From Dimorphilus gyrociliatus (lineage: Eukaryota > Animalia > Annelida), in NCBI GenBank assembly GCA_904063045.1, contig CAJFCJ010000003.1, positions 2,652,504-2,716,503 on the forward strand: 64,000 nucleotides of DNA, read 5' to 3'. Shown in pieces: positions 20,873 to 48,407 of the stretch (its first letter is position 1; each line of letters opens with the position of its first letter). The position numbers were made by a program, and so were the translations under genes. Below the pieces are notes generated by a model. That model worked only from the letters and a program-made list of their open reading frames with translations, did no database searches and was not told the DNA's origin.

Positions 20873-23830
20873 AACTAGTCTAGTAATACGTTTCTAATTT
20901 AATAAGGATTGTTTTTATTAAATTTCAAAAATTTCGAAATATTTCACTTACAGAGAAACAACGAGTAGGAAAGTCAAGTTCTTTTACAACGAGTTGTTTA
21001 CCTTCGTCGGCAACGGTAAGACTTGATTATTTTCGTATCTTTTCTAAAACTTTATTAAAAGAGCATTAAAAGATGTTTCAGCTCTTTTTAGAACAACGAG
21101 ATTTTTTGTATATTTTATATTTTATTCTATAATTGACTTTTACAAAAATATTCCAATCTTTTTATACTTTTTTTATATTATTTCAAAATTTCTCTACTCA
21201 TCTTTCACTAGTTAGTATTTTTTAAATAAATTATAATGGCTTTTATGAAATTAACGATGTTTAGATTAATTTTAAAATAATTTTTACTAGTTAAACCACT
21301 AATTTTTATATATTTTAAACATATTTACTAATTTTTATTAGAATATAATAATTTTGCTCAACTCCGTATATTATCGCTCATAATTGATTTCCTCTCCCCT
21401 TACTCTCTCTTATTAAAACTATTATAATTGATTTAAGATTTAAAATAACTTGGAATATTTTATACTTTTTGATTTTAATCAAATAGAAAAAAGTTAAATA
21501 TTTTTAATTGTCAAAATATAGAATACAAAGTTTTGAGAAAAGAACAAAAAAGTTGGAATATAAGTTTTTTCAATTGATTCTCTTTTAGAAAATTAGATAG
21601 AATGGCACCCTGTGTCTTTCATTTTTTCATTCTTAATAAAAATAATAAGATGTCTGCAAAGAAAATCAGCGCCTCCTACATAAAAAAGATATCTAATTGA
21701 GGACGTTATAAAGGCCAAAAAATGGGAGTATTTTCCCTTGCAAATGTCGTAGGAAAATACTGTCAGATATTTTGTAATTTCATAAAGATTATTGTATTCT
21801 TTCAATTTTTGTATCTCGAAATGTCATCATTTTATCAACTGCATAAATAATTTGACAATATTTTTTTTATTATTATTACCATAAATTAACATAGAGAGAC
21901 GTAATGCCTAATCTATACAGTATATTAGGCATAATCTCTTAAAAAATGTGAACAATATTACTTTTGTTCTTTTTTTGGAACAAGAAAATCATCTTATTTT
22001 CTCATCTTTCTTATATATATATATATACTGGAGAGCCTTGCAGCCAGCGAAAGAGGAAAGAAAATGTCACCAATTTTGGACGACATAATTTTGTCAAATA
22101 TTCCAATGCTTCCTTGTTTCTTTACGTAAAATTGACTAGTCGTAATGGGACATAGAGACAACGTCTAATAGAGTTTGTTTCCACAAGGTTCACCTTAAAT
22201 TGTGTCGTTGTTTCATCATTATTAATATCATTGTGAACAAGTTGTATAATAGTGTTTTAAGAAAGAATATAATTAGTCTTTACGTGTATAAAATATAAAT
22301 AGAAGAATTTCCTATATTTCACAATCTTTAAAATGGCAAACTAGAAGCAGCATTTCCAGTATAAACTCCACAGCGTTTATACTGTATATTTTATATTAGG
22401 CTTATATAGAATAATTATTACTAATATTCTATTTATTCTTCATTAGAATATATACTTTTGACTAAGAATATTACCATAAAACTCTGTAACAATAGCCTTA
22501 AGCCTGATTTATAAATAAATTGCTTTTCACAATTAGGCATTCGTTATAATTAAACTTTAATAAATATAATAATTCAATGTAAATAATATACTACATAATG
22601 GGTAATGAACACACGTTCTGTGTTTAAAATTATATACTTTAGCTAAGTATCAATACCCAAATTTTTCTAGTATTTAGCCTGAAAAACTTCTAATCCGTTT
22701 TCATTAGCTGTATATAAACCTTTCCAATATCCTTAATAAGAAAATTAATTTCCATAGTTAGTTATTACATCCATCTAATTTCTATTTATATACATTTTCT
22801 AACAGTAAATAAAGCGTTAAAACCAGGATTTCAATAGGTCGAGAGGTTGTATAAAATTTTATTATGTGTAGTTTTTCAATTAACTTTTTAAACTAGATGA
22901 AAAGAAAAAACAAAAGAAGACAAATAAACTACATAAATATTTTATATATCAATAAAGTTATTTGTTATTTAGCAATTCAACAGTTGTTGAAAAATGATTT
23001 TTTAAAAATCGATTCTACATTTTCAACAGAAGAATTCGAGTTAAAATATATCTGTTATACTAACTCGCACTTGTCGTTTTATCACTGATAATTTCCTATC
23101 AGAGATAGAGAAGTTTCTTAGACACAAAAGAGAATATCTATAATTGCCAAGGTAACTTTATTTGTATTGCTTCTCATTATTCTGTATAAGTAAAACTTTA
23201 TGGGGAAGAATAGGGAAGAGAAGAGAGTGAGGGTGTGTAGAAAAGAGGAAAAGATATTAGTTTAATGATTTTTCCTTTATTTCTAATTCTCTTTTTCTCC
23301 TGTATTCCAAACAAATGAGTATCGTTCATTTGATACTTTTATTTGTTGTTGCAGTAGCTATATTATTTTACACTCACGCAAAAAATATGTCACTTTTACC
23401 CGAATAGCATCCGAATTTTACGACAATATTACGTTTATACACAAATCTTCATCATTATAGAAAAAACGGACTACATATTCTGCTAAAATTTTTAAATGTA
23501 ACATCTAATGTCTAAAACAATTGTTATAATAGAATTTTCAGTTTTTCCAAGTGTCTTCCTCTCTGTATATACAGTATGCATATATATATAAATAGAGTAT
23601 AATAGTATATATCGCCTAGTTATAGCTACATGTAGACCTACAACCTAAAAGCATGGCCATCCCGCACGATATCTCCACTTTGATGGGAAGTCTATTGATT
23701 TCATGGGCCTGGACCTTTCTTTTATCAAAATCTAGGCATAATCGTGTAAACCATCGTTTTAGAACCGTACAACGAACAAGACTTGTTCTGACCTCATTCG
23801 ACTAGCAGCCAAGATAAGAAGGTGAAGAGT

Positions 23831-25000
23831 ATGTCTGATTTGGCCCCTTTCTTAACGAAATATTGGAAAGAGACGACGATAACTATAGCTATTGGCACGT
23901 CGGCGTTAATCGCTTATAAAAAATGGACTGCTAATAAACGACTTAAGGAGGCCACAGATGAAGAGGAAGATGATATGGACGGTAGGGAGAAGCCTGAGAG
24001 AATGCAATCAGAGAATTTCGAATCAGTTGACAACGACTTTTATGACGACCTCGCGAATTGTCCCGAAAAACAACTAGAATATCAACCAAGGAAAGTACTT
24101 TCCTCTAATGATACTGCGCTTAGCTTAATCCACATATCAGTTTATACGGCATATATTATATGTAACACACACATACACAAGAAGATATATCGATTAGGCT
24201 CAAGTCTACTGATTACATAGATGAAGTTTAAATTTTAGTTAATTTTATCTCCTACTAGCAGAATGATAATGACTATTATTTTAACAGTCGCTACACTGAA
24301 GATGAAATGTTTACCAGAGCCAAGGAATTTTTTAACTTGATGAATTTAAGACGTTCTTGTAGATTTATGAGTGACGCACCTGTGCCCAGAGAAGTTATCG
24401 AAGAAATAATTCGAACTGCTTCAACTGGTCCGTCTGGGGCCCATACCCAACCGTGGACTTACGTTGTTGTTCAGAATCCTGAATACAAGAAGGAAATTCG
24501 TAGAATAATTGAAGAAGAGGAAGAAGTTAATTACAGGAAGAGAATGGGAATGAAGTGGATTAATGATTTAAAAAATTTAAGAACATCTTGGTCTTGGAAG
24601 AAGCCCTATTTGGAAGATGCACCATATTTGATAGTCGTTTTTAAACAGGCTTACGCTCTATCTAATGGTCATAGAAAAACCTTGTACTATAATGAAATTT
24701 CAACTTGTATTTCAGTTGGTATTTTGCTTGCAGCAATACAGGTTGGCTAAAAATTAACTCTTCTTTTCAATAGCAATATTTAGAACGAACTTACTAACTA
24801 TAATATTTTTATAGAATGTTGGACTGTGCACTTTAACGAGTACACCAATGAATGCTGGACCCCGCCTACGAAGCTTATTAAATAGACCACCAAATGAGAA
24901 AGTTATCTTACTTCTTCCAGTGGGTTACGCTGCTACAGATGCAACCGTACCAGATTTGAAAAGAAAAGAATTGAAAGACGTCCTCATTTGGGAAGATTAA
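23831..25000 (+). CDS. IYD: Iodotyrosine deiodinase (nitroreductase fold) with N-terminal membrane anchor
   Basis: [48 protein letters not shown], and last exon [36 protein letters not shown]...VPDLKRK; the first intron boundaries are not fully resolved. Confidence 0.95.
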
Positions 25001-25633
25001 AACAGTTCTGAATTAATAAATTAAAAAATATTTAAATATTAAGAATCATAGTTTTTTTCGTATTTTTTCTCGATTTTTCTATACAGTAGAGATATTTTAT
25101 GGATTACAATATCACAGTTTACACAATGTGCAAATTTTAAACAATTATCATATACCTGTTTACATAATATATCTTATATACCTATATATTTATAATATTA
25201 ATATATAAAACGTATATATTAGTAATATATATACCGTATATACAGTATATATATATATATATATATATATACTGTTTATTAAAAATTATGTTAATAAATC
25301 ACTATTTTAATTAATTTACATAATAATTAATGTAAAAAAAATGTTTGTTTGTAGTTAAAATAATAGTCATCTATGCTTTTTCGTCAATCCAGCTCTGGGA
25401 TTATGAAAAGAACAGAAGACAATGAAAAACAAACAACCTTTTTTCTTGTTTTTAATTAGAAAAAATTCACTATATAATAAATTCTTGTATAGCATATAAA
25501 TATGATAGTTGGAAAAGAGAGAACGTTTCCTATATGAGCATAATTTTTTTACGCTTTTTATCTTCTTTTATCTTTTTTTTATGTTCATATTTTTAACATT
25601 TTTCTTTTTTTTCATTTTCTTGAAAAAATCTTA

Positions 25634-25752
25634 TCAGCAGAGAACGAGGAGGAAGAAAACGAAGAAAACTAGGCTATTTATTCTTGATCGAAAGCTTGCG
25701 GCGGGATTATTCATATATCTATTGTTTTCAGCCGATTGTTGATGATTATTAT
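25634..25752 (-). CDS. sol-1-like terminal exon with hydrophobic C-terminal tail
   Basis: TTTTGCAG|AT...; DNNHQQSAENNRYMNNPAASFRSRINSLVFFVFFLLVLC*; phase 1 matches the preceding exon. Confidence 0.6.
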
Positions 25753-28700
25753 CTGCAAAAAAGAGAAATAACAATAATTTCTGAGCTCCTTTCAGAGTTG
25801 AAAAAATAAGAATTGGATAATTATTTTTAAAGCTGTTGTTCTTTTTTTTTTTAGCTTTTATATGAATGAAAGGAAAGGAGCATGCAATATATATATGTAC
25901 ATCTATATGAAATTCAATATATACGACTGGTAGAGGGTGTATTGATATTTTAAGGAAAAAAAGAAATAAATATGACTATTGGAATTGTAATTTCAAAATC
26001 TGGACTGACGATGTGGAACATTGAAAATCGAAAGTTCGTTAGTGGGAAACGACCCTTTTGGGACAAGAGTATTTCGGATTTGACGCCTGTATTTTAACGC
26101 TTAAATATGCTTTTCATTCTCGTTTAAGGTTTAAATAAAAAAAAATTAATGATATTTACTTTTTCCTTAAAAAATATAAACTATAGTGAATGATGAAAAA
26201 GGAAGGAAAGTCTGATCCTTTACCTAATTACGATTGTTCGCTAAAACTATTTATATTTTTATAATATCATTTTGTCCTAAAAAGTAACACATCTATGGAT
26301 AAAAATAGAAAAACAGACATAATTTTGGCCTATAAGTTATACATTATACGAACGATGTTCTCAATAAAGAGGATTAATTTTTTTATATCTACTAAGAAAT
26401 ATAAATATACCATTGAAATAAGAATTTATGCATTTATATATGCAGTATATACTGTAGGTCGACTGTTGAGTGCTTCGTAATCGTAACGAAGATTAGTATT
26501 TTAAGACTATTTTATTATCATTCTTTCTCCCATTAAATATCTACACTTTGCATTAATGATCATTATAGAAAATGTATGAAGGGTATTTGGAAGTGAAAGG
26601 AAATCCGCTACATTTGTGGTTGAGAACAAAGTACCCTACCAAGTGAGTATGAATACATTTTAAGATGTTAAAGAGAATTTGTAGCTTACTATACATAGAG
26701 TAATATATATATATATATATACCCAAATTTACAATATACTTTATGTATACGTATATTAGCTATTGAGTAGCAGAGCACGAGAAAGCCATTATAGCTTTTT
26801 TATCCAAGTTACTTAATATTTTCTAGTAAAGTTGAATAGATGCCACCTTCGAACTCTTTATTGGGCGTCGAACCGTAATAGAGCGTGACGTTTCCGCTAT
26901 GTACGGTCACAATATTCGCTATAACGATTCTTTTTGATGACCCACATAACTCTTATTTATCTATACACCCTTATTCTATATCTAGTCTTTGTATTTTTGT
27001 TTAAATTATAGAAAGCCTTGTCAAGCAGCAGCTTGAACTTTAAGAGAATGGGAAAGAAAGTTTTAGAAACAAAGATAGGAATAAGATAGGTTTAACAGAA
27101 CAATTCTAAAATGGTTAATTCTATATCTATTCGTAAAATCTCATTGAATGACCTTTTTTCTTTTTGAACTGGTAGCTCGCTTCAAATCCTTTATCATCGT
27201 AAACCGAATTAGATTTAAAGATAACCCTGAAGTATGGGCCGTCCGAAGTGACCGTTCTTTGATGCGTACTTAAAAAATTTCCGCATAACTTGCTCATCTT
27301 CCTATCTGATATACGAAAACCAAAATTGCTGAATGACACAGAATCGCTTTTTGTTTCTTCTGTACAAGGTTTGATACCCTCGACTGAGAAAGTTAAAAAG
27401 TGAATTTGAACTATTTCTTCTTCTTCCATTTCTCCTTTGAAAACGTACTGGCATTCAGTATTCCGGGGATAATCACCAGGATAATTTGGACTAGTAAACA
27501 TGCCACTTTTAGCCTGACGGCTAGTAAAAGTGAAGATACATTTATCAGCTTTATCTTGTATCCCCGTATAAATACCAAAATTAGTTAGAAATTTGTATCT
27601 AGCTTTGAAACCCTTAAATGGAGCCTTGATACTAGACTCTTCCCGTTCTACCGAATCAAAGATAACCTCCATAAATTGATTCGGTGACATAAGTTGGCGG
27701 TTATCCATTTCCCCGCAGAAAAGTCCGATATCTTTCAAATCTCCCTCATCTTTAATTTGTACTCGTATAGAATCAATAGATGTACACCTAGAAGGGAAAA
27801 TATAAGCAATATATTATTTTATATAGTATTTACGACGTTACAAGTCTATAAAAGTATGAATTTTAATAATTCAACATAAATATCCAGTTTAAAACTATTA
27901 AAACGTATATAAACTTAATAGAAGGTGTATATATTTTACAAATATTTCACCTTAAAGATATTAGGAAATGAAACGCAGATAAATTAATAAAAAAGATTAT
28001 AGTTTCGAGCAGAAATGCGGATATTTTTAGACATTCTTCCATTGACTAAATCAGATTAAAAAGACGCTAGAGAAAACGACTAATTGCGGTAAAAAGTCTA
28101 AAAAAAACTAATAAAATATTAAACAGAATGTATAATAATTTGTATAGCAATAAGACAACATAACCACTTTATTTCTATGTGGACGACAGATTTTCCTGTA
28201 CGGAAATATATTCTACTTCTCTTTATTTACATAAGAAATGGTATAGTAAATTGAATTATAAGTATTTTTTAATCATTAATTAATTAATATTTGCATAATT
28301 ATATTAATGATTAATTCATAATTGAAAACAGGCTGTATTACTGCTTTATTAATTGTTTTTTCTCAGCTTTCTATATCAATAGACAGGACTATAAATATAT
28401 TTCTTATAAACTACCCTTTCCATACCAAAGGATGATGGTAACTATGTTAGTTTTGTGTTTGTTCCATTAGTGTCTGTTTACCAAGCAATATTCCGCTTAA
28501 ATGACACTGATACTATTCTTTTTATTCCACCTAATCTCTTCTTTATATATTTATACTTTCCTCTTTCAAAGAAAATTTCTCTTTTTTATTTAACAAGTAA
28601 ATTTACATTTACTAATTAAAATATTTTATCTATTTATCTAACTAATTAAAAAGATACTAAAATATTATAAGCGCAGTTATTATACTTACTCAGTCGGATC

Positions 28701-31700
28701 TTTAGCATCATTAGAAATGTAATATAGTTGAACTTCTTCAAATATTACTTGTACCCTTTCTTCTGGGTTACCAATGAATTCGTATTTGCATTGTTGACCG
28801 GAACTATACTCTTCCGGGTATCTTGGAGAAGTAAAAGTGCCTTCCTTGCCTTCTTCACTTTTGAAAGTTTTTACGCAGTCAGAAGCTGTTGTTATTAAAA
28901 AGATAAAAGGGAATAAGTTAAAAATTGGAATATTTACGCAAACTACAATATATCAACAGTATAAATATACTAAATATCTATATGATAAGCGAATATAAAA
29001 ATCATCAATTTCACTTTATACATACAATAAAAAAAATATGTTACTATAATGGGAATTGTGTAAAAAATGACATTTAATGAAGATAAGTGATTGATCTATT
29101 GCTTTAGGTCTTTTTTCTATGCTCTGTGGATTTCTTTTACAAGCTAAACATACGAAATATATGGTTTATATTATATTTTTCTTATATTTCCAATCATTAG
29201 TATAAAGTCAATACTCTAATGTTTAATTGATTTCTGCAACAAGCTTGTCTTGTTATATGTAACAGCTATGATATGTCAGTATGGAATATCTATCATTTAG
29301 CAATTTCCGGCACCCTGTGCTTTTCCTGCATTAACCTAATAAGCTAAGTAATCTCATAACGTTTCTTTTAATTCTTTCTCTACTCTTTCTTAGTAATTAA
29401 TAATTTGCAATAAATGTATTTATAAAATTTTCTCCAGTTAAATCCATAGGAAAGACAAGGAAGAGAGAGAAAACTTAAGTATAGAACGAGAATAGGATAG
29501 GGTAAAGAAAGGAGAACAAATAAAACTTAATCAGTTAATTTTCTTAATTTAATGAAATCCGATTTCAATAAGAGGAAAGTGATAACGAAAAGAAGATTTT
29601 TTTTTTGAAAGTTGTTTGATAGAGAGGTCTTAGTTTACAAAAAGCATTTTATCTAAGCTGACTGCAAATAATTTGCAGAAGAGAGCTGGAGTTTTTTCTA
29701 CTAAAATTATTTGGCTATAAATCGGAGTATTCCGTTTTATCTTCAACAAACTGGAAAGAATTGATTATCAATACTTAATTAAGTAAAATTTAAGAGAGCG
29801 TAAAGAGGAGTTATTAGCGTTAATCAAAAGCGGAAGGTTCTGAAAAAAACCCACCTCTTTACATACTTCTTTTACGTTATATAGAATGCCTTAATAATCA
29901 TTTGATAAAAAGAGGAAACAAGTACATAAAAAGACATAAACCCAGTATCTTTATAAGATAATGATTTTTAAACAATAAATAAATTGTTATATGCCGCAAA
30001 GCTCTTTAAAGAATTGTTTTAATATAGAATAAAAGAGGAAAGGAGGATATAAATCAATAAAATGAACCATAAGAATTTGAAATGTAATCGATAGAATTCC
30101 ATTGACACCATTTTCTTTTGCCCTCTTTTTCTTTTATTATTTTTTTATCTTTCTCTCCCTCTCTCGCTCTCTCTATGTTCTATTGTCGTTCTAATAATTT
30201 TCACTATTCAAAATAAATAAAGAGAAGGGAGGAAAACATGGACAAATAGAAATATATATGATATTTATAAACTATTTACATCGTAATTTAAAGACAATAA
30301 TCTTATTTTCGTAGATGAAATATGATAGAGAAAGAGAGAGAGAGAGAGAATATACAAAGTATGGAAAACCAGAGGTTTCCTGCCTAAAAGTTTGCAAATT
30401 TCTTTATACTCTTCCAAAATAAAAAATATTAAATACACGTTTATTATTTGCAATAAAATTTGAAATAAGCCTATTTCGTAGGTAATTGTAGATTTTTTCA
30501 CGATAGATGATAGAAAATTTTGGACGATTAGATGAATATAAAATGATGATGAGTTTAGAAATTGGCTGACAAAAATATATATTTTCATCATTGAAAATTT
30601 CCTTAAATTTGCCTCTTTTTCATCATATCTTTCTTCTCTCTCCTCATCCTCTTTCTTTAATAGAATGACAAAAGAAAATTTATCATATAAAGACGTAAAG
30701 AAAGAACGGGATGAGAGCTTTATTCAGTTTGGACTATCCTCCAATAAAGAATATACAGCTGCATATAATCCGGTTACGTAACGTTGTAAGCCGTGGGAAA
30801 GCCAAGCATTTTTCAGACAAGACGTAAAAGCGTCACTTGAAAGATTGTTGATAAAATGAAAATTTTTGCTTTTAATGTCAGTTTTATGATTAATCCTTAG
30901 AGGTTTTCTTTATAAACAATAGAGAATTTATAAACAAAATCATAGCACAATAGAAACATAGGTCGCTCATACAGTATTAGGATGAATTGATTAAACTGAC
31001 CCTCAGATAAGCACACTAGGAAAAGTGAGAAGAAAATTAAGAAGAGGAAAAGAAATCGTACACCTCATTTTAATCGAATATGATTAAGGAGAGGAAAGGA
31101 ACAACAACTGAAATAGGCCCTCAAGCGCATCGGTCTATTTTCTCTTCCTAGTCATTAACTAGGGGCGAATCGTTTATTTAGTAGTTTAAGACGAGAAACT
31201 ACGTCTTGAAGTAATGAGTAGGAGAAAACGCAAAGTAGAAGAGGAATAAGACCAATAATTGATCTGATGGGAAAAGAGACAGAAAAAGGTGTAAAATAAG
31301 TAAATTCTTACCGCTGTCGTTCTCCGAATATTTTCCTTTACTAGTTAGAGATGGAGAAAGAACGCTTATTAAAATAGCTAGCGATAGTAGCATAAGCGCT
31401 CCCGTCTGCTTCTGCGTAAGCGACTTGTAATAAAAATTGTCGACGTTCTCTCCCTCTGTCTATCTATCTATCTTGTTTCATTCTATTTCTTCACTACCTT
31501 TTTCTCTTTCTTTCCCTGTCTGTCTATCTATCTCGCTCGGTCTCTTTTCCGACACTCTGCTTCGTTCTCTCTCTCTTTCTCTTTTGTATCTCTATCACTC
31601 GTTTTCGCGGAGCAGCGCACCAGACGCCACTGGCTGTTCCGCAGGTAGCGTTTGAAGTGGCAGACGCGAAAGACGGACACAAGATCGAATAGTTTACAAG

Positions 31701-33531
31701 AGCGAATAAATCAATGAACAATTACAAATGATTGAAGAAAAAGAGCAACTTTAATTGTCTAAAATATGTTAAAAAGTATAAACTAGTAACTCAATCAATT
31801 TTCCGGGCATTAAATCTATTTCCTTTTTCTTTAGTATTATCTACCTTTATAATCATAAGTCTGTTCTAATATCTTTGTTAGATGAAAGTCAAGCGTTAGG
31901 AATCTTTCCTCCTCCCTCCAAAAGAAACACTAAGCCGTTCACCTCAAATCGATTCTAAGTTAAGCATGCAGTCAAAGATAAGAAAGCGCGATAGATGGCG
32001 TATTACTACGTTTAATAACGAATTCACAAACGTTCCTCAATAGAAAGAGCTTTAAATTGTTTTTAAATTACTTAAGTAATACTCGAATACAATGTTTTTC
32101 TAAGAAACCTATAATGAGTATACAATCCATATATTATATCACTAAACTAGTTTATAGTAGTTATACTTGTATAAACCGTTACACATAGTATAACGATTCA
32201 TATAATTGTAAAAAAAACTACCATCTCTTTGGATAAACATTTATAACCTTTAACTTAAAAAGAAATAAAGCAAATGCTGAATAAATATACAAAATAAGAG
32301 AAAATACTTTTTACAGGGGTATGGATGATAAGCCAGAACACTTGTATCAAAACAGTTTGTCTATGAATATTATACATATACTGTATAAGCTATTTAGGAC
32401 AATAAAAAATTATACTAATTCCTGTCAGGTGTTTTTTCCTCCATTTAATAACCGAATTAGTTCTTTTAATAGAACTTAATATAAGCTATTTTTAATGAAA
32501 AAAATTTCCCAAATCCATTGACATATTTTAATTATAGTAAAAAAAAACTATAATAATACAAAAACTCCCAGAGAGAATTCCTAAGAAATGATGAAGAGAC
32601 AGAGAATTAGAGACGGAGCGAGAGAGAGAGAAAGAGACGGACAGACAGACAGACAGACAGACACAAGTAGGGATTGAAAGAGAAGAGAGAGAGAGAGAGA
32701 GAAAACGAGCAATACTCTATTTTTCAAATAGGAGTATTTTAATTTGTTTATTTTAATTTAATATTGATAAAAAAAATTCAATTGAAAAAGCTATCTGTTG
32801 CTTGCTTGGTCAGACTAAAATTATTATACATAAAGTACGTTACTACATAATAAACATGATTGAGATACTTTACTACATAATTAATACAATTTTTGTATTT
32901 TACAATTTAAATAATAGAACTGAATATATGTATTTAAACTATATTTATAATTTAACTTTTAAATACTAGATGGCGATAGTGAGTTTATTTAGATGATATA
33001 CAGTATATTTCTCATTATATAAATAAACTTGCAAAGTAATACTTTAAATTATTATGTTATGTTTTATTTAAATATTCATTCAATGTAGATTTTCTACAAA
33101 TATATTTCCTTTTTGTAAAAAAAAACGAAAAAAAAAAGAAAAGCTATTAAGGATAAAAAGATGAGAGAAAAAATTTCTAAACATTTACGAAAACTTATAC
33201 ACCTGCATAGCTAGATAATTTCAATGCAGTTTGTCGGCTTTAAAAACAAAATAAGATGATGAAAAGCAAAAGAGGAAAAAAAAGGCGTGTTCTCGTGAGT
33301 TTAGAATGATAAATAGCCACTTAAATGACAAGAATGTTATAACACTATATAAAAGATGATGTAAATGAAATGTAACAGATTTTCAAGTGTAATAAATAAA
33401 GTATACCTTTGGAAGAGTTAAAAGAAAAAATCTATTAATAATTTTTGTTATATACAAACAAAGGAGATGTGAATTTCATAAATAGTTTGCTCCAAATTTC
33501 ATATATAATAAGTTTGTAGTATTAATAAATT

Positions 33532-33584
<53 letters not shown>

Positions 33585-36500
33585 TTAAGAATGAAAGTAA
33601 GAGAAGTACCAGAAAAGTAGGTGAAAAATCCATTTGATCCTAGCTGCATATATTATTTAACGAAATATCCTATTCTTAAATACATATACACATATATCCA
33701 TATGTATTTATTTGTATATTTTTTGCAAATGGGAAACATCTAGGTTTGTTCTGTTTTTCACTGTTAAAATTGATTATTAGTAGGTTTTATGCAATTTTTA
33801 GAAATAAGGATTATAGGACTTGTTCTTTTCTTTCTCTCATTTTATAAAAAAAGACTAAAATGGAAATAGAATAATTAATTATGACATATAGCGAAAAGAT
33901 AAATGTATATAACTATATATCTACATATTTTGACTGATTCCTACTGTATATATGTGCATTTTTATGATTTTTACTCTCTTTTCATATAAGAATAAGCATA
34001 ATTTTTTGGAACGTTCCACTAGCGGAAGAGTCTCTAGAGGCGCTTTATTAGGTCGCGAGTTTGTACACTTTACAGAGATCGTAAAGGGAAAAGCATAGTA
34101 TGAAAATGCTGGAGAAAATGAAAATAATAAAACACTGATAAATAAGACTCTTTATATTGTAATACAATGTTAAGTTTTCGCAAACGTTAGATATTTATAT
34201 ATAAAAATATAGACAAACTTACTACAAAGACCAATGACTGCTGTAAAACAGCAGAAAACTCTATAGAACATGGCCAGCTCGATTAAATCGATCAGAGTGA
34301 CGATGCGCATCCAAAATTTTGTAGTATATCTTACTAGATGTCGCTTTTAGTTATTTTATCAATGAACTTTCTTTTCCCTTTTACAAGTGTTATTTTTAGA
34401 AGTAATAATTACACTAAATTAAATTTTTATAGCAATAAAAGGATAATGGTGGAGCAGTTCCTGTTTTAAAAATACCTTCCTCCCCCATCAGACTACATAG
34501 TTGAATATTCCGATGGAAAAGAGATATTTTCTGAATGAATGTTTTCTTTAAACATTATCAAACTATGATAAAAAGAAAATTAACATATGCTTTATGATAC
34601 TTTTCGGTTCTTTTTTAGTGTCTTTCATTCGTTTTCCTTTTGTTTTTGTTTTTTCTTCTTATACATAAATATATATAGACAACTTTTGGATATTTCAAGG
34701 CATAATATAATAATTTCTCCATCCTCAGAGAGAAAAGAATATGCGTCAGGAATGAAAAAACAAAAATAAAAAAACAAAAAAATATAAAGCTCTAACGCTA
34801 TTGCATTCGAATTACTTCATTAATCTCTCCGTTATTTCGGATACTTTGTCATATAAAATAGAAAAATTCTTATTTTCGTAATCGAAGAAAAGACAAAAAG
34901 TTTCTTTCATCTTCTCCTATCGTTTGAGGAAAACATACTACGTAGAAACTTCCCCTCTCCCTTCTAGCTCCCGTCTGTCTAACTGTATATAAATATATAG
35001 ATATATGTATAAGTATGTGTATTTGTGTTTTCTCTCCCTTTCTCTCTCTATCTTTCTCCTTCTTCTCCTTCTACTCTCCTCTTTTTTTTAATTCACTAAT
35101 TTCTTTGTATCAAATAAATCTTTATAATCATGTTATGTCATAAGAGATTACTTTCGCTTAAATTATCTGAGCAAAAATATCATAAACTAGAATTAGCTAA
35201 TTTCCTAGTAAATTGAGTCTTATGCGGTCACTTACCTTTTAATTCAATTAATCAGAATTTAAGTTTAAGTTTACTCGGTCTTTCTTTTGAAAGCTGCTTT
35301 AAACTAGTTTATCTTTTCTATTGTAATTTATCATATTACTATTCTTTTTTTCATTCAATATATATGTTAAGACAGGCAAAAACAACCAATACTCTAAAAT
35401 TTACATTTGCCGAGATCACGTGATCAGGCGTAGAAGATGGACAGATTACGAGCTCAATTCGGCCTCCTAAAGTTCACTCATCTATCACTTTTTCCACAAA
35501 TTACAAGGAGAATAACAGTACTAAATACTGAATAAGAGAAATACAATGCAAAATTACTTTTGTTCTAGTTTTAAATTTGTTCTTTTCTGAAAGATTTTCT
35601 TATAATTTAAATTGGATACAAGATAAGATATTCCGATATTAATTTTCTTTTCTCCAACATTTCTGACTTCTCTTACTTCGTATTTTTCTCAGTTTCTCCT
35701 CCTCTTAGTTCTATTCCCTTTTCGTCATTCTTTTGCATATCATTTCTTATTCCGCTGTTAAATCCATCTAACTAATTCAATTTCTTACATTTTCAATAGT
35801 AAAAAATTTAATATTTTCTTTTCCAGTTTAAGATACGGAAATTATAAGATAAAATGATATGATCGAATAGGCAAATAAAAGTTGATCAAGGGTTGTAACG
35901 TGATATGTCATTGCCGATAGACAAGTTTTAACATCAGAGCTGGGTCTTTAAGGTTCATTTAACCATGGTTTTTTATTCTCATTAATCAACTGATTTATGA
36001 TATTTTTCTCTAATATTGATGGCTACTAAACCATTTACATGTTTTTATACCGATTATGTATGGAATAGATAAGTATACCTTAGGGTTGGTTCTGTATTCA
36101 TGATAAAATTTTTAAATAAAAGAGTTAATATTTAAAGGAATCGAGATAGCCAAGACAGACAAAGACGAAAGGAGAGTAAAAAGACGAATGGAATGAAAAA
36201 TTCCAGCATTTACTCGGGCAAAAGAATGTTATTTATGTTAATTCGTCTAGACACTTTCAAATTGTCAATTTCTCTAACATGATCAAGGTCTTTGAGACAA
36301 TAGGCCCAGAAATTTCCTAATGATTATCTTAATTCAGATGATAGTATTTAAGGGAAAGACTATAATCTCAATACAATATATGGGAGTTAATCGATATTTA
36401 ACTCAGATAAGCAGGAAGGAAGGAACAAACAAATTTTGTATAATAAGTTCAGAAACGCAAAAAGAATATAGGAATCAAATTAATAACAATTAACTTCTGC

Positions 36501-37921: not shown

Positions 37922-40900
37922 AATAAAGAAGAAAGAAAAGTTATATCTTTCTTATTTGAAATAAGGTCAAAAGCAATTGAAATTAATAAGGAATTTTCAG
38001 GTTATTTTATCATTAGAACACCATTGCTTCGTTATTGATGTCAATAGTTCGTACAAAAAATAGCTTAAATATAGCGGAATGAATCAATTACTTTTCTTAA
38101 GAATTTATGTCCGGGGGACTACAGGCCTAGGACCATTAAAGGCAAAAAAATTGGAAATATAGGCTTGAAAAGACTTGTCTTTTAATCTAAGATACGCAAC
38201 ATTTGACGAAATTACATTCAAATCGAGAATAGAGTATAGATCCACGAGATTCATTCTGCACAAAGAGAGTGGTGAATTTTCCAGTAATATTATTTAAATC
38301 ATGCTAATAAATATTCATGAGCATAAAAAAAGTTATTAGAACTGGATAAAACTTTAAGTTCGATTGTTGTGTTTACACTTTAGTTTTTACTAATAGACGG
38401 CTTTCACCATTCTTAAGTTTGGTCCTTAATTCAGAATAAGTCTCTACAGTCAAAGTCTAAAAATAGAGTAGAGTGATGGGGTGGAGAGAGAGCAAAAGAG
38501 AGGGGCGGGAGGCGGGAGAGAGGGAGAGAAGAGAATATGCGTAGGGAAAAAAAAACATCTATAAACGCCACACAAGCAATTTTTAGCTATTGAATGACGA
38601 TGCCAACTGCAAGGAAAATGTCGTAATTCCTTTAGATCTATTATAGACGTCTAGACGGACAGTCGATTTCGTTAATTTGTTGGCTTCTTTGCGGCGTCAA
38701 AAACTAACGGAATATCTGATAGAATTTCGAATAGGTCTTAATAAAAATGAATTGCTTCCCAAACAAGAACATTTATACTTAATAATCAAAATAAAAAAGT
38801 TACTTTTCACCGGAAATTTGAAAGGAAAAACCACAAATAAAAATTTTTTGGCGCTATCTACCGTCTAATTCCCTTATTAAAAAGTATAAAATCTATTAAT
38901 CGAACGAATTATTAACCCCCTTCATCCTTTAGTATACGTTAGAATGTTTTACTGGGCTATGCTTGGTTATATGAATGTAAATTAAGTATTTTAGGTTTTT
39001 TTAGGCCTTAGAGGCATCTAAGGAAACTAATGATAATATAAATTTATTCCACTCGTTAGATGGCGTTTGAATAAATTAATAAAATATTATATTTACTTAT
39101 TAATGACAACACGAAGAAAATACTAAAAGATAATTAGCAGTCGTATTAACCTAGAAAGATATTTATCACAACCGGTTTACTAATGGAAGATAAAAAGAAA
39201 AAGAAGAGAGAGTGGGGACAAAAAGAGAAAGTTTCTTCTCTTATAAATATGTCATATATGGAAAATATTCAAGAAATATTCGAATTATACCTTGGGGAAT
39301 TAAGTAAGCTCATATCTTTAATTGAAAATATTTATGATTTAAAAAGAGAATTGCTAATAATATTAGGAAAGAAAGAAAATTCCAACTTTTCAATATTTGA
39401 TCATTCCGTAGAAATATGGAAAAATATGAAATGATATTTTCTCTTTTCCCTTCATCTTTTGAAATATAAATATAAATATATACTATATGTATTTATATAT
39501 ATACAAATATATTTATATTTATTACATTAATCTTATCAAGGTCAATCTTTATCTTTTTGATTAGTTTCCTATCATTTCTTCATTTAAAAACCATTTCATT
39601 TCAACAAAGATTATTCTTTCTATTCTTCAAATTTTGCTTTCCTTTGTTAATCGTTTTTCCTTCTCCCCATCTAGTTTCAACCCTTCTCTGTCCCTTTTTC
39701 ATCTATATTCCCTGTTTTTTTTCAAAGCTATACAACAAATTTCTAATTAAAAATTATGTGTCGATTTAGATTAGCAACAGCTGATGAAGATAAATAATTT
39801 GTAAATAGAAAAATTATTAATTAAATCTAGTGTAAAGTAAAGCGAATTAAATGGAGAAAAAATAGATTTAACTCAATTTCAAATTTCTGTATGTATGAAT
39901 GTATCTATGTTTTTGTCAGTGTTTCTTTTATTCTATTACTATTAAGTAAACATTCTGTAAGGCTAAATAGCCTTATATACTCTATATGTATAGGATATAT
40001 ATATATATATAAATTTGTATTACATTTTCGCTGTTTTCTTTTTATTTCAGTAAAATAAATTTGTGTAAATGTTAAACAGATAAAAAGTCTGCCTGGATCT
40101 GATTAAATTTATTTAGAATGGATCAAATTTACAAAACCGTTATTTCATTTATTGGAGTGAAAGAGAGGAAATTTTTGTTCCTTTCATTTTTTCTTCTTAT
40201 TCCATTTGGATTAAATAAAATTTTTGATATTGCATTCAGAGAAATAAATAGGTAGTGAAAGAAAGAAAGGGAGAAACGAATAACACTCAACTTTGACCAA
40301 TCTATGCATTTTTTAACTCTAAAGAGAGAAAAACACTACTCAGATAAATACAAGTAATAATGAATATTGATACACACTAGAGATACTTGTATGGATTCAA
40401 TTTAAAAGGCAAGTTTCAAGTTTCAAAAGTACGAGTAAAGGAGCGGGAAAGTGATCTCAACTGTTGATGGGTAATTTCCTTGAGTAACCAATTCGAGTGG
40501 AGAAATTACCATGGGATTAATAATATCCTAGAATAACAATTACAATACCCAAGGAGGAATGGGAATTGACCAGGCTAAGTGCTTGCCGAATATATTGCCC
40601 TAACTCACAACCTTTTTACCAAATAAACAAAATAAACACTTACTGAAAGGACGCTGCGTGACTGGGCTTGGTGAAAGTTCGTTGCCATGGTTATTATCGG
40701 GTGGACGTCGCGTCGAATAATCTATATAATAAATAATAAATTTTCGTTTGAACATTTCTTGGTAAAGTATATTAGTTTTATTTTGTGATAAATAATATAG
40801 ATGGAGCTACGTACGAAAGTCGTCTGTAGGATGTACGCCATTCTTATAGGGTTTATCCCGAAATTGATATCTGGCACTGAATCCTTTCAGCTGATGTCCT

Positions 40901-42606
40901 TGATCACTTTTAAATACAACAACAAGAAGTCTACCAGGAGACGAAATCTGTTAAAAACAAATAAAAAAGAGTAAAATATTAATAAATTTTTAGCAGATAG
41001 ATGGCAGAAGTGTTGTTGAAAAAAGAAAAAAAGAAGAAGAATTTGTCCCTTATTCATACCAAATAGAAAAAAAATAAATACTTTAAATGAGGAAAAGAAA
41101 TCATTAAGAAGTGAAAACCGAAAAGACTGTAAAGAATATTTTATCAAATAATTGCATTTTAAATGATTAATAAAAGTTTATAATAATATCAGGGGATTTT
41201 AGAAGAGTGTTGATTATTTATGAGATCTAATTAAAACTATAAATTTTCGATTCCTTTTTCCTTTAATAAAATACTTAAAATTTAAAAATTAATGTTAAAA
41301 TAAGATAACAAAAAAAGGAGAAGATAGTAAAAGAGAAGAAACTATCGGTCACATATTTTAAGTGGTATTTCCAATGAATGACACTTAATAATGCTGTTTG
41401 AAAATTTCTATCCTTTTTACAAGCCTTTATAGGCTTTTAATTAATAATATTCCCTTTAAAACAGGGAAGAAAAAGTAGCAATAGGCGTCTCTCTCTCTCT
41501 CTCTCTTTTAATGCTTTTTCTTGTATTTTGTTATTATTCCATGTGAAAATTCTCTTAGTTCACTAAAACTCAAAGCTTTCGTCTCTATACTTTTCATTTT
41601 TTATCATCCAAATATTTTGAATGGGTGACAAATTTCTTATAAAAAGCGGATTATTTTTCTTATCTCTTTAAATAGGATAAATCTGAGAGAAGCAGCAAAA
41701 TCCGTTATTCATCTTCTAATACCATTTATATTCAATAAGTGTTGTTTTGCAAATAATTTGCATTTAGACATCTCTCCTTCTTAAACAATTTTTAAACGAA
41801 CAAAAGGTTCTTTATAGGCTTATACTCAAATTATAAATTTGATTAAAATCTAATCGGCGAAAGAAAGAAATTATGCAAACAGAAGCATAGAGTTTATAAA
41901 ATCTTTCTACTAAAATTTCAATATCAACAGATATTAGCTATACTTTTATAAAACATATTAGTCTTACCTCTATGTTATTCCCTAGATTATTCAAACATCT
42001 AATGGGAGCAGCTTTTTCAATGTTCATATCTTTATAAATTATAATAGCGTCTGGTGAACTATAACAGTCGCCGTCGTAATTTTGCAGTAAAATATTCTCG
42101 AATCTCAAATTGATTATATGCTTATCATCTCCCATAAATATGTATTTGCACAAGCTATTTGGCGGATAATTTTGAGGGTACTTAGGACTGAAGAATTTTC
42201 CAGATTTATTCACGCTTGGTTGAAATTTATAATCGCATTCAGATGAAAATGATTTAACGCCATTCGTTTCGAAGTTTTCTGTTTTGAAATAAAAGAAAAA
42301 TAAGACAATAATAACTAAATATATATATAAATGAAAGAGAGATAAAGATAGAAAAAATATGATTGAATTAAACGATTCCCTCATTTCTTTTACATTCCCA
42401 AAGAAACGCATAAATTGCGTAATTCAAGTAGAAGATAATGGGCGGGTTTTTTAGAGAATATATATTTTTAATACAACTACAAGATAATTAACTTAAGTAA
42501 AGCATCGATAATATTACAAAGACTTACTTAAAAATTATATACATTGCATAGTAAAATATGTATGAAAATTTATAATAGCTTAGTCTTAGTAGAAGAGATA
42601 GATAGG

Positions 42607-42638
<32 letters not shown>

Positions 42639-45600
42639 CAAAGGGGAGGTTATAGCTTTGTTTTATGCAGCCTACTTAATATTCCATACAACAGAGACAA
42701 TATATACTGTATATTAATTCAATAAGAGGAAGAATTGTAAAGATTACATGTACTTTATTTTGTGTACAGATAATCATTTAATTGAATCTAATTGCACCTA
42801 AGTAGGCTAAAAATTATACTTTTAGTCTTCATCTAAATAACTTCCTACATGGTATGTGAAGAAAATTTGACTGTGCAGCAGCATAATTTTTTGGCTGTGA
42901 CGTCACACCAAAGTAGTTTCTTGCCTATTTTCAACATTTTGGAGAGCTATTAGCTTTATTTGCAAAGCTACAACAGTTTAAAAGTGCAAATTTTATTAGA
43001 TAAGGTTAATTTTATAGTGGAGAAAATGGCGGTAGAGTAGAAAGATTTAATTAAAAGCGTTTATAATAAAAAAGAGTGTAGCCTAAGGTATTCTTTGTTT
43101 TTGATAGTCTCTCCTGTTTATATTATGAAAACCTTTAAAATATTTATGAAAGTAATTAGAAATTATTGGAATATTGTTGATAGAAGATTAATTAATTTAT
43201 AATATAGTATTCATAGGATGAACTATATACAAAACGTGGCCTGGTAATTCATTATTAAATAAAGCAAAAGCCACTCACGAATTCCCACAAGCAGGAAGAC
43301 GCAAAATTACCAACTCAAACGCGACTGAAAAACTCTACAGTACATAGAAACGCTTTTAATTCTTCATTGCAATTAGCCAGAAATATTTCGGTTAAATTTC
43401 TAATTAGTCACGTTTCGTCATTTGTATTGATAAAAAACGGGTTCTGGTTCACCGCTAAAAAATGTTCTTTTCTAACTACATCCTGTTGTCAAGTTTGACC
43501 TTTTTTTCCTTATACAAGTTCTTCCTTTCTTAAGAGTACTTTTTCTATTCCCCTGTCTTTTTTGCCTCCTCTATTCTACGTATTTTCCTTTATACTACAT
43601 CTCTATAAAATTCTACTTAATGAACTCTTTATTTACAAATATTAAAACCAACAATTAATGGTATATCGTCTATTTACAGTATTGGAAGATTTATTCTAAA
43701 CTTACACTTTTTTACACTGCTTTGCATGTCTACTAAATAGGCCTATAGTATTTCCATAGGGAGTCGGCTATAAACCTAAATTTGTTCTCATGTAGATTTT
43801 AATGTGTTTGTCACGAAATCTCTTCATGAACATTTTACTGTATCTTTTTTCAAACAGATAAGTAAAACTTTCATATCTTTTTTAAAGGATAAGAAAATTA
43901 TAGAGTAAGATTTCTTTCATTGTGAATATATTTAATTTATATCCTTTGCAAAGTAAAGAGAAAGAGAAATAGAACATTATCTTTTAGCATTTCTATATCA
44001 AAGATATTTTGTAATTAATTTTTGCTGTAGATTACAAACAAACTAATATTTATATAAACATAAAGAAAGATTAGTTTCTTAAATTTAAAACCACCGTTTG
44101 TTATAGTTCATAAATAGTATTAGTTACATAACGTAATAGATTCCCCCCATCCCTTTCCCCCAATGGATTTTTTTCTCTATCAATCAAATAACAATTATTT
44201 CTATTCATATAACATTTTCTTTTACTTGGAAATTGATAAGAAGAAACCCTAATCATATTGAATGATATTAATTAATTTATAGTTATATATTTAAATGTAT
44301 TATATATGAAATTGAGGAAAAGATGTATAAAATAAAATATATTTTCCATCCAATGACGAAACACGGATGGATATTATATTTCTTTATATATTTTATTATA
44401 ATAGTAAACTACGCTTTGTTTATCTTTTCTCTTTGTAACGAATGATGCAATAGAAAGGTTTTTTTTCACTTACTTTTATTGAGAAACCTGAATTGGCCCT
44501 TAAATCCAGTATTGCTACCGTTATGCTTATCGCTATGAAACTCTAGAATAAGCGACCTCCCTGAAGAATAATGTGTCTTTTGTATCATTGTAAAATTTCC
44601 GCACATTTCGTATTGATACGTCGTCCTTTCGCTGATTTCTGGCCGAGGGAGGTCTACAAAAAATCGTAAAAAATCCGTACATCTGTTGGGGAAAAGAAAG
44701 AAAATTAGAGAAAGTGATCCCCCCTCCTTTGAAGTGCCTAATACATCTGTGGTTCTATTTGACTTGTCCTCTAAAATATTTCGTGATAAGATGAGAAAAG
44801 TACTACCTATTAAGAGAATAACTACTTCCTTTCACTTTTCGAAAGTGTGTTAAGACAAATTTGACGCTTGTACTCTAGTTTATACTGTCTTAACCTTGAT
44901 AAATTTTAAACGATGAATTTTGTAATTAAATTTTCCTCTCTTGCTATTAGACAAAAAAAAGGCAGGAGAAAATCCTAAGTATTATAACTTATTTAGATTA
45001 TCTTCATTCCTAAAAAAGATCAAATGGAAATTCTGTTAAAATATAAAATTTAAGGGAAACTTTCTTCTTCTCTTCGATTTTCTGTCAAAACCATTTATTT
45101 CTAAGAATAAATCATTTAACATTAAAAATTGACCTCCCCATCACCCTTTTACGTAATGCTCATCTTATTACTACTATTATCAAGTTTATTAATAAACTGT
45201 AAAGAGAATGATAGAAATAGATTTATTTATTTAAGAATAGCAATCCATTATTACATTAATAGATACTATTTTTTTGTATATATTGTATAAATGGATTTCC
45301 TTTCAGAAACAAGGAGTGCTCTTTAAGGAAGAGAGAAAGAAAAAGAGTGTCACTGTTTGTTGTATGTAAGAACTGAGAAAGAGAGTCAGACAGACAAACT
45401 ACGCAAACAACATGTTGCGTATGTGAACTGGGATAGGGGGGGGGGGGGAAAGGGAATGGTAGAGAAGCACAAGATAAAAAGTGTCACAAGACCCTACTTA
45501 AAATAAGTAACTATTAAAAGTTAGTGAGCTAATACGGGTAATCTTGAATGATTGTTTAGACCATTAAACATATTCTTTATCCTATTCTTTGTTTGTTGTT

Positions 45601-48407
45601 TTTGTTTGTTTAAATGAAACAAAAAAAAAAGAAGACTCAAGAGAGATTTCCTTCAGAACGGATGAGTGAACAAGTTCGATTTTTTGTGTCGTATCTAATA
45701 AAATTGAGGACATTGATAAAATTCTCCTAAATTTAGGAAGAAAGGAGAAAAATATTTTCTAAAGTGACAACAAGTTAAGAAGAGTTTTATAGAGGGAGAA
45801 GAGCATGTATGAGGAGAAAGGAGAAGAGTTTTCCCTTCCTTCCGTGCTGTTAAAATGATTAGATGTTCCGCCAACACTTAATCCGCTCAGAACTTTTGCC
45901 ACATTGGCGGCCAAATCGATTTTCGTTTTTTTTCTCTTTACCGTATATAATTACTGATTTTCCTATAGAAAGTCTCGTTTGCTTAAAGAGAAAAGATTAA
46001 AGAAAGTGAAAAACGAAGAGATTGCAATACAAAAAACAGAGTCGTTTAAAAGAAGGATTCTTGTCGTGATTGTTCTCTATTTTCAACCCTCATCTCATAT
46101 TAATTGGGCAAAGGGACAATTTAACCCGTTGACTAGCGATAGAATCTAGAAAACTATTAAACGAAACGTTTGATGTCAAAGCTTTTATCTTTTTAGATTT
46201 TTTTTTTATTCTTCAACTTAATAATATTCTTTCTGTTCATTTTCACTGTTCTTTCTAGGCACATAAATCTTTCACTTTCATTAAATGCGGAAATTTTTCT
46301 CGCAAGTACAAGAAAAGTATAGCACTAATTAAATATCAACTATATAGGTTTTGCTTTTGTATATTTGTCCTAGATATTTCCCTCCATCCAATTCACGCAG
46401 CAATTAAGTTAGCGAGTTTATTTAAAGGAAAGTGGGTTTTTTTTTCGGAAGACAAGTCCAATAGAAAGTAAAAAGTAAATAGAAGGGAGGGAGAGAGAGA
46501 GACAGACAGAAAGAGCGATCGAAAAAAGGAATAAAGTTTTTAAATAAATGTTACTTACTTGCTAGAACTAGGAATTTGTAAATCGAAATTGAGGAAAGTA
46601 ATTTCAACTATTTCGTCACGATTACTCCCAATAAACGTGTACAATATACACGATATATTACTCGGGTAAAAGGCTGGGTAGGATGGTGACGTAAAGGTTC
46701 CAACGTGCTTTTCCGAATTAGGTACACTTTCGAAGATAAGGCATTGGCATCCTTTAATTTTTCCATTAAAGATGAGAAGAGATGATAATGATGACGATGA
46801 CGATGATAGAAGAAGAAGAAGAAGAAGAAGAATAGAAAGAGAGAAAAATAAAATTAGTAATAATTCACAATTATAAACTATTTTTTCTTTTTTTTTTGTG
46901 TTTACTTATAAATTATCATAATCACTTTAGTTGTTTTATTTTGCCTTTCTGTTACAAATATAATAATAAAAAAGTACTAGTAGAAAGATAATTAAGTAAC
47001 ACTAACTTATTTTCTTTTCCTAAATATAATAAATAATTAAATATAACTTCTAATATTTAAATTGATTAAGAAAGTTATTTAATAATAATAAATCTAAATT
47101 TAGAAAGGAAAATAAAAAAAGTTATAAGATTCTCGATAAATGCTCTTAAAAACTCCCAAAGGCATAATAATGGTCTGGCAAATAAAAAGGCTAGTTGGTA
47201 GAACCTTCTCATTTTTTTTTCGTCTCTGCGAGCAGCATGGTATTTTCAATTCATCTTTCTTTTTTCTATTTATTATTATTACTATTTTCCTCTTTTTATA
47301 CTTTTGTTTTGTTTTTTTTTAAGAAAGAGTGAGAAAGAAGAAAAAATTATCTTTATATCTTCTCTCTTTCTCTCTCCTTTGCCTTTGTTTCAAACAAAGA
47401 CTAGACTTTCTGGTATATTAATTATGTGTATACTATTAATAAGAAGTTAAAGTTTAGTATTCAAAGTATTGTTACCATGTGCTTGAACTTTTTGTCACCT
47501 TTTTATCCTTATCAATTAATTAAAAAGTCCGTATTAATCAGTTATTCATAGTACTTTTCGGAGACTCTTCTCAGCAACATATAGTTTACAGATTGACCTT
47601 TAAAAATCCATCTATTAGACAAGGGCATATTAAGAAGGCGCTAATTACATTACGTAATGTGTTACAGTTGAATTCCAATTAAAATATTTAGCTTAATTAA
47701 TTGACATTTACTATGCTGAAGCTTAGCCCTACTTTGGCTTTATTAAAGGATTCACTGCGTCATGGTAACCGAAGCTTTTGGGATTAAGTTCTCGGCTAGT
47801 AATTTCAGTGAACATTTCAAATAGGAAGATGTGCTATTTTATCATTTTGTTTGTTTATTTTATCGATCGAACTACTTGTCTTTCTTAATTTTTCAATAAT
47901 AAATATATTAGTCGTCAGAATTTTTAAAGAGCTTCTTTCCAGAGAACTATACTCTATAAAGAAACCTTTTTGTACAGTATAATGTGTAATGTAAAGGAAT
48001 TCTGAGAAAATAGTCAATTTGTTAATTATCGTTACAGTGACCGGAAATACTTAATAGAATTTATCAAAAAAACTACTTTTAGAAATTGAATTGGTTACAA
48101 ATTAAAGAGAAAATTCTTAACAGAAATAATGAATGCGTTCAATGATCCGAATTATGTAAAAATTGTAATTAAACAGTTTTATAGTTTCAAGTTTAACATA
48201 TTTCCTCCAACTCTTTTTAGCCTTCACCTTCTCTAGACAGTTTATTATTCTCTCTATTTATAATCAAGTACTATTCCCTTATTCTAAATATTTTTTTCCA
48301 ACACTTATGCTTTTTCCTACCTAATTTCACTTTTCTAGCCTTTTTTTTATTACATTTAAATTGAAAACTATAATCGATTTGTCTCGAATAAAGAAAGAGA
48401 AAAAGGG

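Follow-up and report, generated by a model that had tools for sequence, protein, structure and literature searches.

Among the auxiliary subunits of invertebrate AMPA-type glutamate receptors, SOL-1 is a textbook case, and it has always been described as a membrane protein with four CUB domains. SOL-1 of Caenorhabditis elegans, dSol-1 of Drosophila and honeybee SOL-1 have been described as type I membrane proteins with four CUB domains, and a soluble form with all four was reported to be partly functional (PMC9083331; PMC9546428). The family is treated as protostome-specific (PMC9282427). In C. elegans SOL-1, CUB3 was reported as the critical domain (review PMC9083331). Here, a SOL-1-like locus of the annelid Dimorphilus gyrociliatus was analysed in a 64,000-base stretch of contig CAJFCJ010000003.1 (positions 2,652,504 to 2,716,503), referred to below as the window and numbered from its first base. 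The locus lies on the minus strand of this AT-rich sequence (29% GC) and, like the three published proteins, encodes four tandem CUB domains in the same order (identified with Pfam exon by exon), together with a leader at the N-terminus and a hydrophobic segment at the C-terminus. It differs from them by an internal exon, leader-B, which probably is a real first exon and provides the CUB3-CUB4 half with an export signal of its own, the resulting product containing CUB3 and CUB4 only.

The alpha, beta and gamma neurexins offer a precedent, as in these genes an internal promoter and a signal-peptide exon located in a long intron give an N-terminally shortened, independently targeted isoform. The logic of the mechanism is the same, with the C-terminal part common to the long form, but the protein family is unrelated and the comparison is by analogy only.

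The internal exon was noticed in an earlier reading of the DNA letters alone (the original prediction), which stated that no modular SOL-1 of this kind had been described. No description of a natural CUB3-4 form of SOL-1 was found in the literature searched, and to this extent the statement holds. Its novelty was nevertheless overstated: the exon already starts the public gene model DgyrCDS2549, and CUB3-4-only proteins that start with a leader of their own are frequent in sequence databases. The present analysis adds the link to the upstream CUB1-2 exons, a corrected C-terminus, an estimate of the statistical rarity of such an exon and a cross-phylum parallel at the same intron.

A probable first exon within the CUB2-CUB3 intron

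Leader-B was counted as a first exon on the basis of its anatomy, its rarity, the public model, a GC/CpG-rich patch, cuttlefish cDNAs, the corresponding intron of Lottia, a phylogenetic tree and an environmental cDNA. The exon occupies positions 31312-31393 (minus strand) and corresponds to residues 1-27 of P0001, the protein of DgyrCDS2549. It starts with an ATG at 31393-31391 and comprises 27 codons (MLLSLAILISVLSPSLTSKGKYSENDS) and one additional base (G at 31312), followed after ...AGCG by the 5' splice site GTAAGA (31306-31311). Splicing of this phase-1 donor to the acceptor of the CUB3 exon at 28885 joins G with CT into an Ala codon, after which SDCVKTF follows in frame, exactly as in the junction proposed originally (A-SDCVKTF). 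The exon had been delimited as 31312-31423. The first of these bounds is correct, but no feature was found at 31423, the ATG being located 30 bases inward. The hydrophobic, signal-like core of the leader (LLSLAILISVL) has a mean Kyte-Doolittle value of 2.86 over 10 residues, and either SPS or LTS could occupy positions -3 to -1.

The reading frame upstream of the ATG is open as far as a TAG placed 19 codons before it, and this interval contains three AG dinucleotides, every one of which would act as a phase-0 acceptor. Due to this, leader-B could not be an in-frame cassette following the second CUB2 exon and must therefore be a first exon. A GC/CpG-rich patch, the candidate core promoter, extends over 31514-31721 (GC of at least 0.48, CpG observed/expected ratio of 1.4-1.5), 120-330 bases upstream of leader-B in a window averaging 29% GC. 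The GC-rich, promoter-like patch of the original prediction is hence present, and so is the CT-rich stretch, seen as a GA-rich sense strand between the patch and the ATG. The putative 5' leader contains an upstream open reading frame of five codons (ATG AAA CAA GAT AGA TAG; 31464-31481, minus strand).

To estimate how often such an exon arises by chance, sequences were scanned for an ATG followed by 15-45 open codons, a window of 10 residues averaging 2.2 or more in hydrophobicity and a GTRAGW donor. In random sequences with the dinucleotide make-up of the intron, 0.067 matches were obtained per 11.9-kb intron per phase, and 6% of these sequences had any match. The real CUB2-CUB3 intron contains two, and phase 1 is the only phase in which they occur. 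The whole window, scanned on both strands and in three phases, has five matches at four loci. Three of the four lie on the strand of the gene and in phase 1: leader-A, leader-B and 34271-34223. Leader-A is the true first exon of the gene, and its recovery therefore served as a positive control. The third locus is a second candidate internal leader (34223-34310, minus strand, with the ATG at 34310 or 34271; …MFYRVFCCFTAVIGLC) ending in a GTAAGT donor in phase 1. Either an additional alternative start or chance could account for this mini-exon. When the sequences preceding leader-A, leader-B and the candidate at 34 kb were compared for shared promoter motifs, only 8-10-mers at chance level were obtained.

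Coding exons of the four-CUB reading

The frame and splice sites were checked for each exon singly, and searches were performed exon by exon, the joined models never being used as queries. Eight exons (E1-E8, all on the minus strand) make up the long reading. E1, or leader-A (52852-52927), was recognised by the scan and by a motif, encodes MKSVSKWILLLL…SDAVDP and ends in phase 1. The two halves of CUB1 are encoded by E2 (46559-46751) and E3 (44474-44682), both placed by alignment and frame. E4 (41968-42278; Pfam CUB, E 2.8e-8) encodes the first half of CUB2 and E5 (CUB2b, 40815-40947; Pfam and frame) its second half, ending in a phase-1 GTACGT donor. The first half of CUB3 is located in E6 (28690-28885; Pfam CUB, E 1.5e-7), whose phase-1 acceptor is common to leader-B and CUB2b. 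E7 (27153-27787; Pfam CUB, E 5e-16) carries the second half of CUB3 together with CUB4 and has a weak donor, GTCATT, after ...KKKK. E8 (25634-25752), defined by conservation in a related species, encodes a linker and a C-terminal hydrophobic tail (…SLVFFVFFLLVLC, stop).

Similarity of the CUB1 and CUB2 exons to CUB1-2 in SOL-1-like proteins with four CUB domains is seen, for example, in CILYTFIG, HYSSGRSLILEFHSD and FFSPKYPQNYP. The motif SDAV(D/N)P precedes CUB1 in both lineages compared, SDAVDP ending leader-A and SDAVNP occurring in a cuttlefish protein of 614 amino acids. The CUB2b donor at 40815 (GTACGT) and the CUB3 acceptor at 28885 (...aacag) are both of phase 1. By exon arithmetic, E1-E8 remain in one open frame of 1872 bases (623 amino acids), and leader-B (31393-31312) with E6-E8 gives 1032 bases (343 amino acids). 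The splice phases, the exon sizes and the retained GTACGT donor would allow a four-CUB product of 623 amino acids. No second close copy of CUB3-4 or of the leader was found elsewhere in the 77.9-Mb assembly.

The seven introns of the gene measure 0.9-11.9 kb each, the one between CUB2 and CUB3 being the longest (11.9 kb). The median intron of the D. gyrociliatus genome has 66 bases, and unusually long introns tend to bear open-chromatin peaks (PMC7854359). Past the CUB2b donor, read-through on the minus strand gives Arg-Thr-stop (40809-40807), with an AATAAA 25 bases further on (40782-40777). Because of this stop and the nearby AATAAA, a transcript for a secreted CUB1-2-only product of about 309 amino acids (by exon arithmetic) is conceivable.

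The public gene model and the C-terminal tail

The public protein DgyrCDS2549 (P0001, 312 amino acids, NCBI) opens with leader-B joined to CUB3 exactly as had been proposed, and the 203-amino-acid open reading frame at 27127-27738 (minus strand) is 100% identical to it. The gene models of this genome were derived from Augustus predictions, protein alignments and PASA transcripts combined with EvidenceModeler, and start sites were refined by cap analysis of gene expression (CAGE) (PMC7854359).

The 3' end of the model looks wrong, and the true reading would add a hydrophobic tail. DgyrCDS2549 ends in KKKK-GHSMRFYE-stop by running through the weak GTCATT donor into the intron (27127-27153) and lacks the last exon (25752-25634). 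A contig of a related species (L001; Logan SRR23372229), 76-87% identical to and collinear with positions 25400-30135 of the window, keeps the acceptor of this exon (CAG/AT, the slash marking the splice site). Within the exon, the two species differ by one in-frame 3-base indel and by substitutions that are mostly synonymous or hydrophobic-for-hydrophobic. The exon ends in a 12-residue hydrophobic run located in the same place as the tails of homologues. The original prediction of an anchored CUB3-4 protein gains support here, as the short product can bear a C-terminal hydrophobic anchor via this conserved exon. The tail could be a membrane or a glycosylphosphatidylinositol (GPI)-type anchor. 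Unlike in published SOL-1, the hydrophobic run is placed at the very C-terminus with no cytoplasmic domain, and because of this it resembles a GPI-type signal or a bare anchor. The donor after CUB4 is GTCATT in Dimorphilus versus GTATGT in the relative, and Dimorphilus has a 6-base insertion right at the donor. Because the donor is weak, a tail-less product of 312 amino acids is also possible.

Parallels in cuttlefish and Lottia

One 90%-identity cluster of proteins from cuttlefish (Sepia/Acanthosepion group) contains forms of 348 amino acids and one form of 614 amino acids. The corresponding cDNA contigs, L012 (348 amino acids) and L013 (614 amino acids), come from neighbouring run accessions. 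Starting shortly before the CUB3 cysteine, they agree in all of 1284 bases (100% identity) as far as the end of L013, and the sequences preceding this stretch are unrelated. The short form has its own hydrophobic leader, and the long form carries a leader, CUB1 and CUB2 ahead of the shared part. The upstream parts each finish with AG, and the common sequence opens with CA ACT AAC TGC, which fits a phase-1 intron three codons before the CUB3 cysteine, as in Dimorphilus (x/CT TCT GAC TGC). The cuttlefish cDNAs show the two-product arrangement at the homologous intron. As would be the case at the Dimorphilus locus, the two products have a common CUB3-CUB4-tail part and differ upstream of the junction. 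The cuttlefish gene extends over 148 kb. The cuttlefish leaders have no sequence similarity to that of Dimorphilus, and the evidence is cDNA in the cuttlefish whereas it is genomic anatomy and a gene model in Dimorphilus.

In Lottia gigantea, the CUB2-CUB3 intron is found at the same position and in the same phase (x/AG F R C) and, at 29.5 kb, is the giant intron of the gene. The scan detected exactly one match in it, in phase 1, which is predicted to be a signal-peptide exon (L014:16731-16824; MNKVKPVLCFFLITVQIILSIGKRTPEIENQ, followed directly by GTAAGA). The same phase-1 position was found in two annelid-like metagenome contigs (x/TG T D C), in which no leader was detected within about 1.1 kb of the acceptor. 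The four independent short-form leaders of Dimorphilus, Lottia (predicted), cuttlefish and Bradybaena share a small basic cluster (KGK, GKR, RRK, GRK) soon after the hydrophobic core.

Two-CUB relatives and the phylogenetic tree

Whole-protein searches were conducted with the public protein P0001 as the query. The library-wide search returned many relatives falling into two length classes. In relatives of 580-690 amino acids, P0001 aligns to the C-terminal half, and in those of 300-390 amino acids from about residue 15-60. Many of the short relatives have a typical leader at the start and a hydrophobic tail at the end. They were found in scorpions, spiders, ticks, crayfish, mantis shrimp, a midge, Trichuris and the leech Helobdella, several being represented by cDNA-sized contigs. 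A complete protein composed of leader, two CUB domains and tail is also encoded by an environmental cDNA (L015), in which an in-frame stop precedes the start. The best matches, annotated as suppressor of lurcher protein 1(-like) in molluscs, a nemertean and arthropods, are 39-50% identical over both CUBs. Multi-CUB proteins of about 2000-3800 amino acids also appeared near the top of the match list, and no LDLa module is present in the Dimorphilus protein. Judged from these alignments, the closest relatives are SOL-1 orthologues and not Neto/SOL-2, LEV-10 or cubilin.

A maximum-likelihood tree was rooted on the CUB1-2 halves. Two short proteins equipped with leaders of their own, P0045 of Helobdella and the cDNA-derived P0055, formed a group with the Dimorphilus protein (SH-aLRT 89). 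Short and long forms were interspersed across protostomes. The idea that the short two-CUB proteins form one old, separate paralogue clade was rejected, since the two kinds were mixed on the tree, with 20 label changes, no fewer than with shuffled labels.

The stand-alone two-CUB genes (Helobdella HELRODRAFT_188109, Centruroides, Rhipicephalus, Cherax, Oratosquilla and Trichuris) encode proteins of 330-360 amino acids which, like the predicted short form of Dimorphilus, have a pair of CUB domains homologous to CUB3-4 between a leader and a hydrophobic tail. The leader exon of Helobdella, like that of Dimorphilus, ends in phase 1, with the junction one codon from the CUB cysteine.

One gene or two, and the alternatives to an internal start

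The original prediction held that the locus may yield both a full four-CUB protein and a separately targeted CUB3-4 protein. This was corroborated in part, by the leader anatomy, the in-frame splice, the public model, the four-CUB exon arithmetic and the cuttlefish cDNAs. Two arrangements come into question: one gene with two promoters, giving products of 623 and 343 amino acids, or two genes, one for CUB1-2 and one for CUB3-4, after a completed split. The two are close to evenly balanced, with a slight preference for the single gene. Unlike the stand-alone two-CUB genes, the Dimorphilus locus still has the CUB1-2 exons immediately upstream, and these share the strand of CUB3-4 and are compatible in phase. 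In Helobdella, no CUB1-2 exons were found within 10 kb upstream, where another gene intervenes, and in Oratosquilla the two-CUB and the four-CUB gene are located on separate contigs. None of 80 loci from Joint Genome Institute (JGI) metagenomes had CUB1-2 exons upstream of CUB3-4, most of the matches being CUB4 exons.

An alternative explanation is a prediction artefact, in which leader-B would be a chance combination of an ATG and a donor in a regulatory intron, only the four-CUB protein would be made by splicing 40815 to 28885, and DgyrCDS2549 would be the 3' half of a gene split by annotation. The CUB2b donor and the CUB3 acceptor match in phase, and the eight exons are open as 623 amino acids, the usual size of SOL-1-like proteins (614-666 amino acids). 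Searches limited in length would have missed any four-CUB protein of the worm, and the highly conserved non-coding blocks of the intron are of the kind usually seen in regulatory introns. The demonstrable error at the 3' end of the public model means that this model is not reliable in detail.

Several further observations weigh against leader-B as a first exon. Ab initio prediction may be the only basis of DgyrCDS2549. A gene finder that has learned from 66-base introns would be likely to break a gene in two at one of 12 kb and to choose the best exon with an ATG and a donor, and such evidence is the very evidence on which the original prediction was based. Because of this tendency, the model is support for leader-B and not proof. 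The N-region of leader-B has no basic residue. The context of its ATG (CTT ATG C) is poor, and the short upstream open reading frame preceding it has a better one. The sole related-species contig ends about 1.2 kb before the exon, and a word search with the 64-amino-acid open reading frame gave no match, a result uninformative as evidence. Among the proteins recovered by the searches, none derived from cDNA of the worm. The Lottia match must be read against a chance of about one in five of finding at least one. A rival for the position of internal start is the second candidate leader at 34310-34223.

Four findings speak against the artefact. The scan expectation is as low as 0.067 per intron, yet leader-B agrees with the gene in phase, strand and donor strength, the cuttlefish cDNAs prove such an internal leader at the homologous intron, the nearest relatives in the tree are short and carry leaders of their own, and a CpG-rich patch is placed just upstream of the exon. 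The artefact is considered unlikely. That the internal start is real but uses the 34-kb exon (ATG 34310 or 34271, donor after 34223), or both exons, is very improbable: this exon, too, was picked up by the scan, has a GTAAGT donor in phase 1 and encodes a longer leader with a hydrophobic core, similar in type to the cuttlefish short-form leader, but it has no GC/CpG-rich patch upstream, is unused by the public model and shows lower hydrophobicity (2.42 versus 2.86) with an acidic first part.

Proposed expression of the locus and its implications

With leader-B as the internal first exon, a promoter within the 11.9-kb CUB2-CUB3 intron of a single SOL-1-like locus would drive transcription from the leader-B site in the worm. 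Leader-B would provide the CUB3-CUB4 half with its own export signal and presumably be cleaved off afterwards. If the last exon is spliced on, the short product would have 343 amino acids, comprising the leader, two CUB domains and the C-terminal hydrophobic tail, and skipping of the weak donor that follows CUB4 would result in the tail-less form of 312 amino acids given in the public model. The short product might still act on AMPA-type glutamate receptors, because it retains CUB3, the domain reported as critical in C. elegans SOL-1 (review PMC9083331).

A broader hypothesis, put forward tentatively and held to be rather less probable than its negation, is that a promoter and a signal-peptide exon in the CUB2-CUB3 intron are an old, conserved feature of protostome SOL-1 genes. 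Each of these genes would make a short CUB3-CUB4-anchor protein beside the four-CUB one. The short form would have become a gene of its own in the leech, arthropods and some nematodes, and Dimorphilus, with the two halves adjacent, would represent an intermediate. Because CUB3 is the critical domain, the short form could constitute the minimal receptor-modulating module.

If a natural short CUB3-4 form does exist in worms, molluscs and arthropods, functional studies performed with the long form only, such as the reconstitution of insect or mollusc receptors in oocytes, may lack a relevant partner, and the domain-deletion result pointing to CUB3 would gain a natural counterpart. The locus is also a clean example for studying how an internal promoter may come before gene fission. 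As regards annotation, DgyrCDS2549 appears to need correction at its 3' end, and its relation to the upstream CUB1-2 exons is poised between one gene and a split, leaning marginally towards the former.

Other features of the window

In the intron between leader-B and CUB3, two blocks (29491-29857 and 29997-30119) are 86-87% identical to the related species, compared with about 76% for the coding exons. They contain 1-base indels and many motifs of the TAATTA/GATTAA type, are probably enhancers and gave no Rfam match. Two further blocks in the intron between CUB4 and the tail exon (26817-26964 and 25961-26127) are about 81% identical to the related species. They are regarded as non-coding because stops occur in every frame in both species, and no Rfam or tRNA match was found for them. 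Rfam and tRNA scans of the 24-48 kb region detected nothing except a mir-14-like match at 47322-47381 (plus strand). It was dismissed as a chance match, as it scored 25 bits against a gathering threshold of 53, lies in GA/CT low-complexity sequence and folds like shuffled sequences (z -0.77).

Downstream of the SOL-1-like gene, a convergent neighbouring gene is located at 23822-25000 (plus strand). Judged by its translation only, its product resembles a membrane-anchored protein of the nitroreductase / iodotyrosine-deiodinase type.

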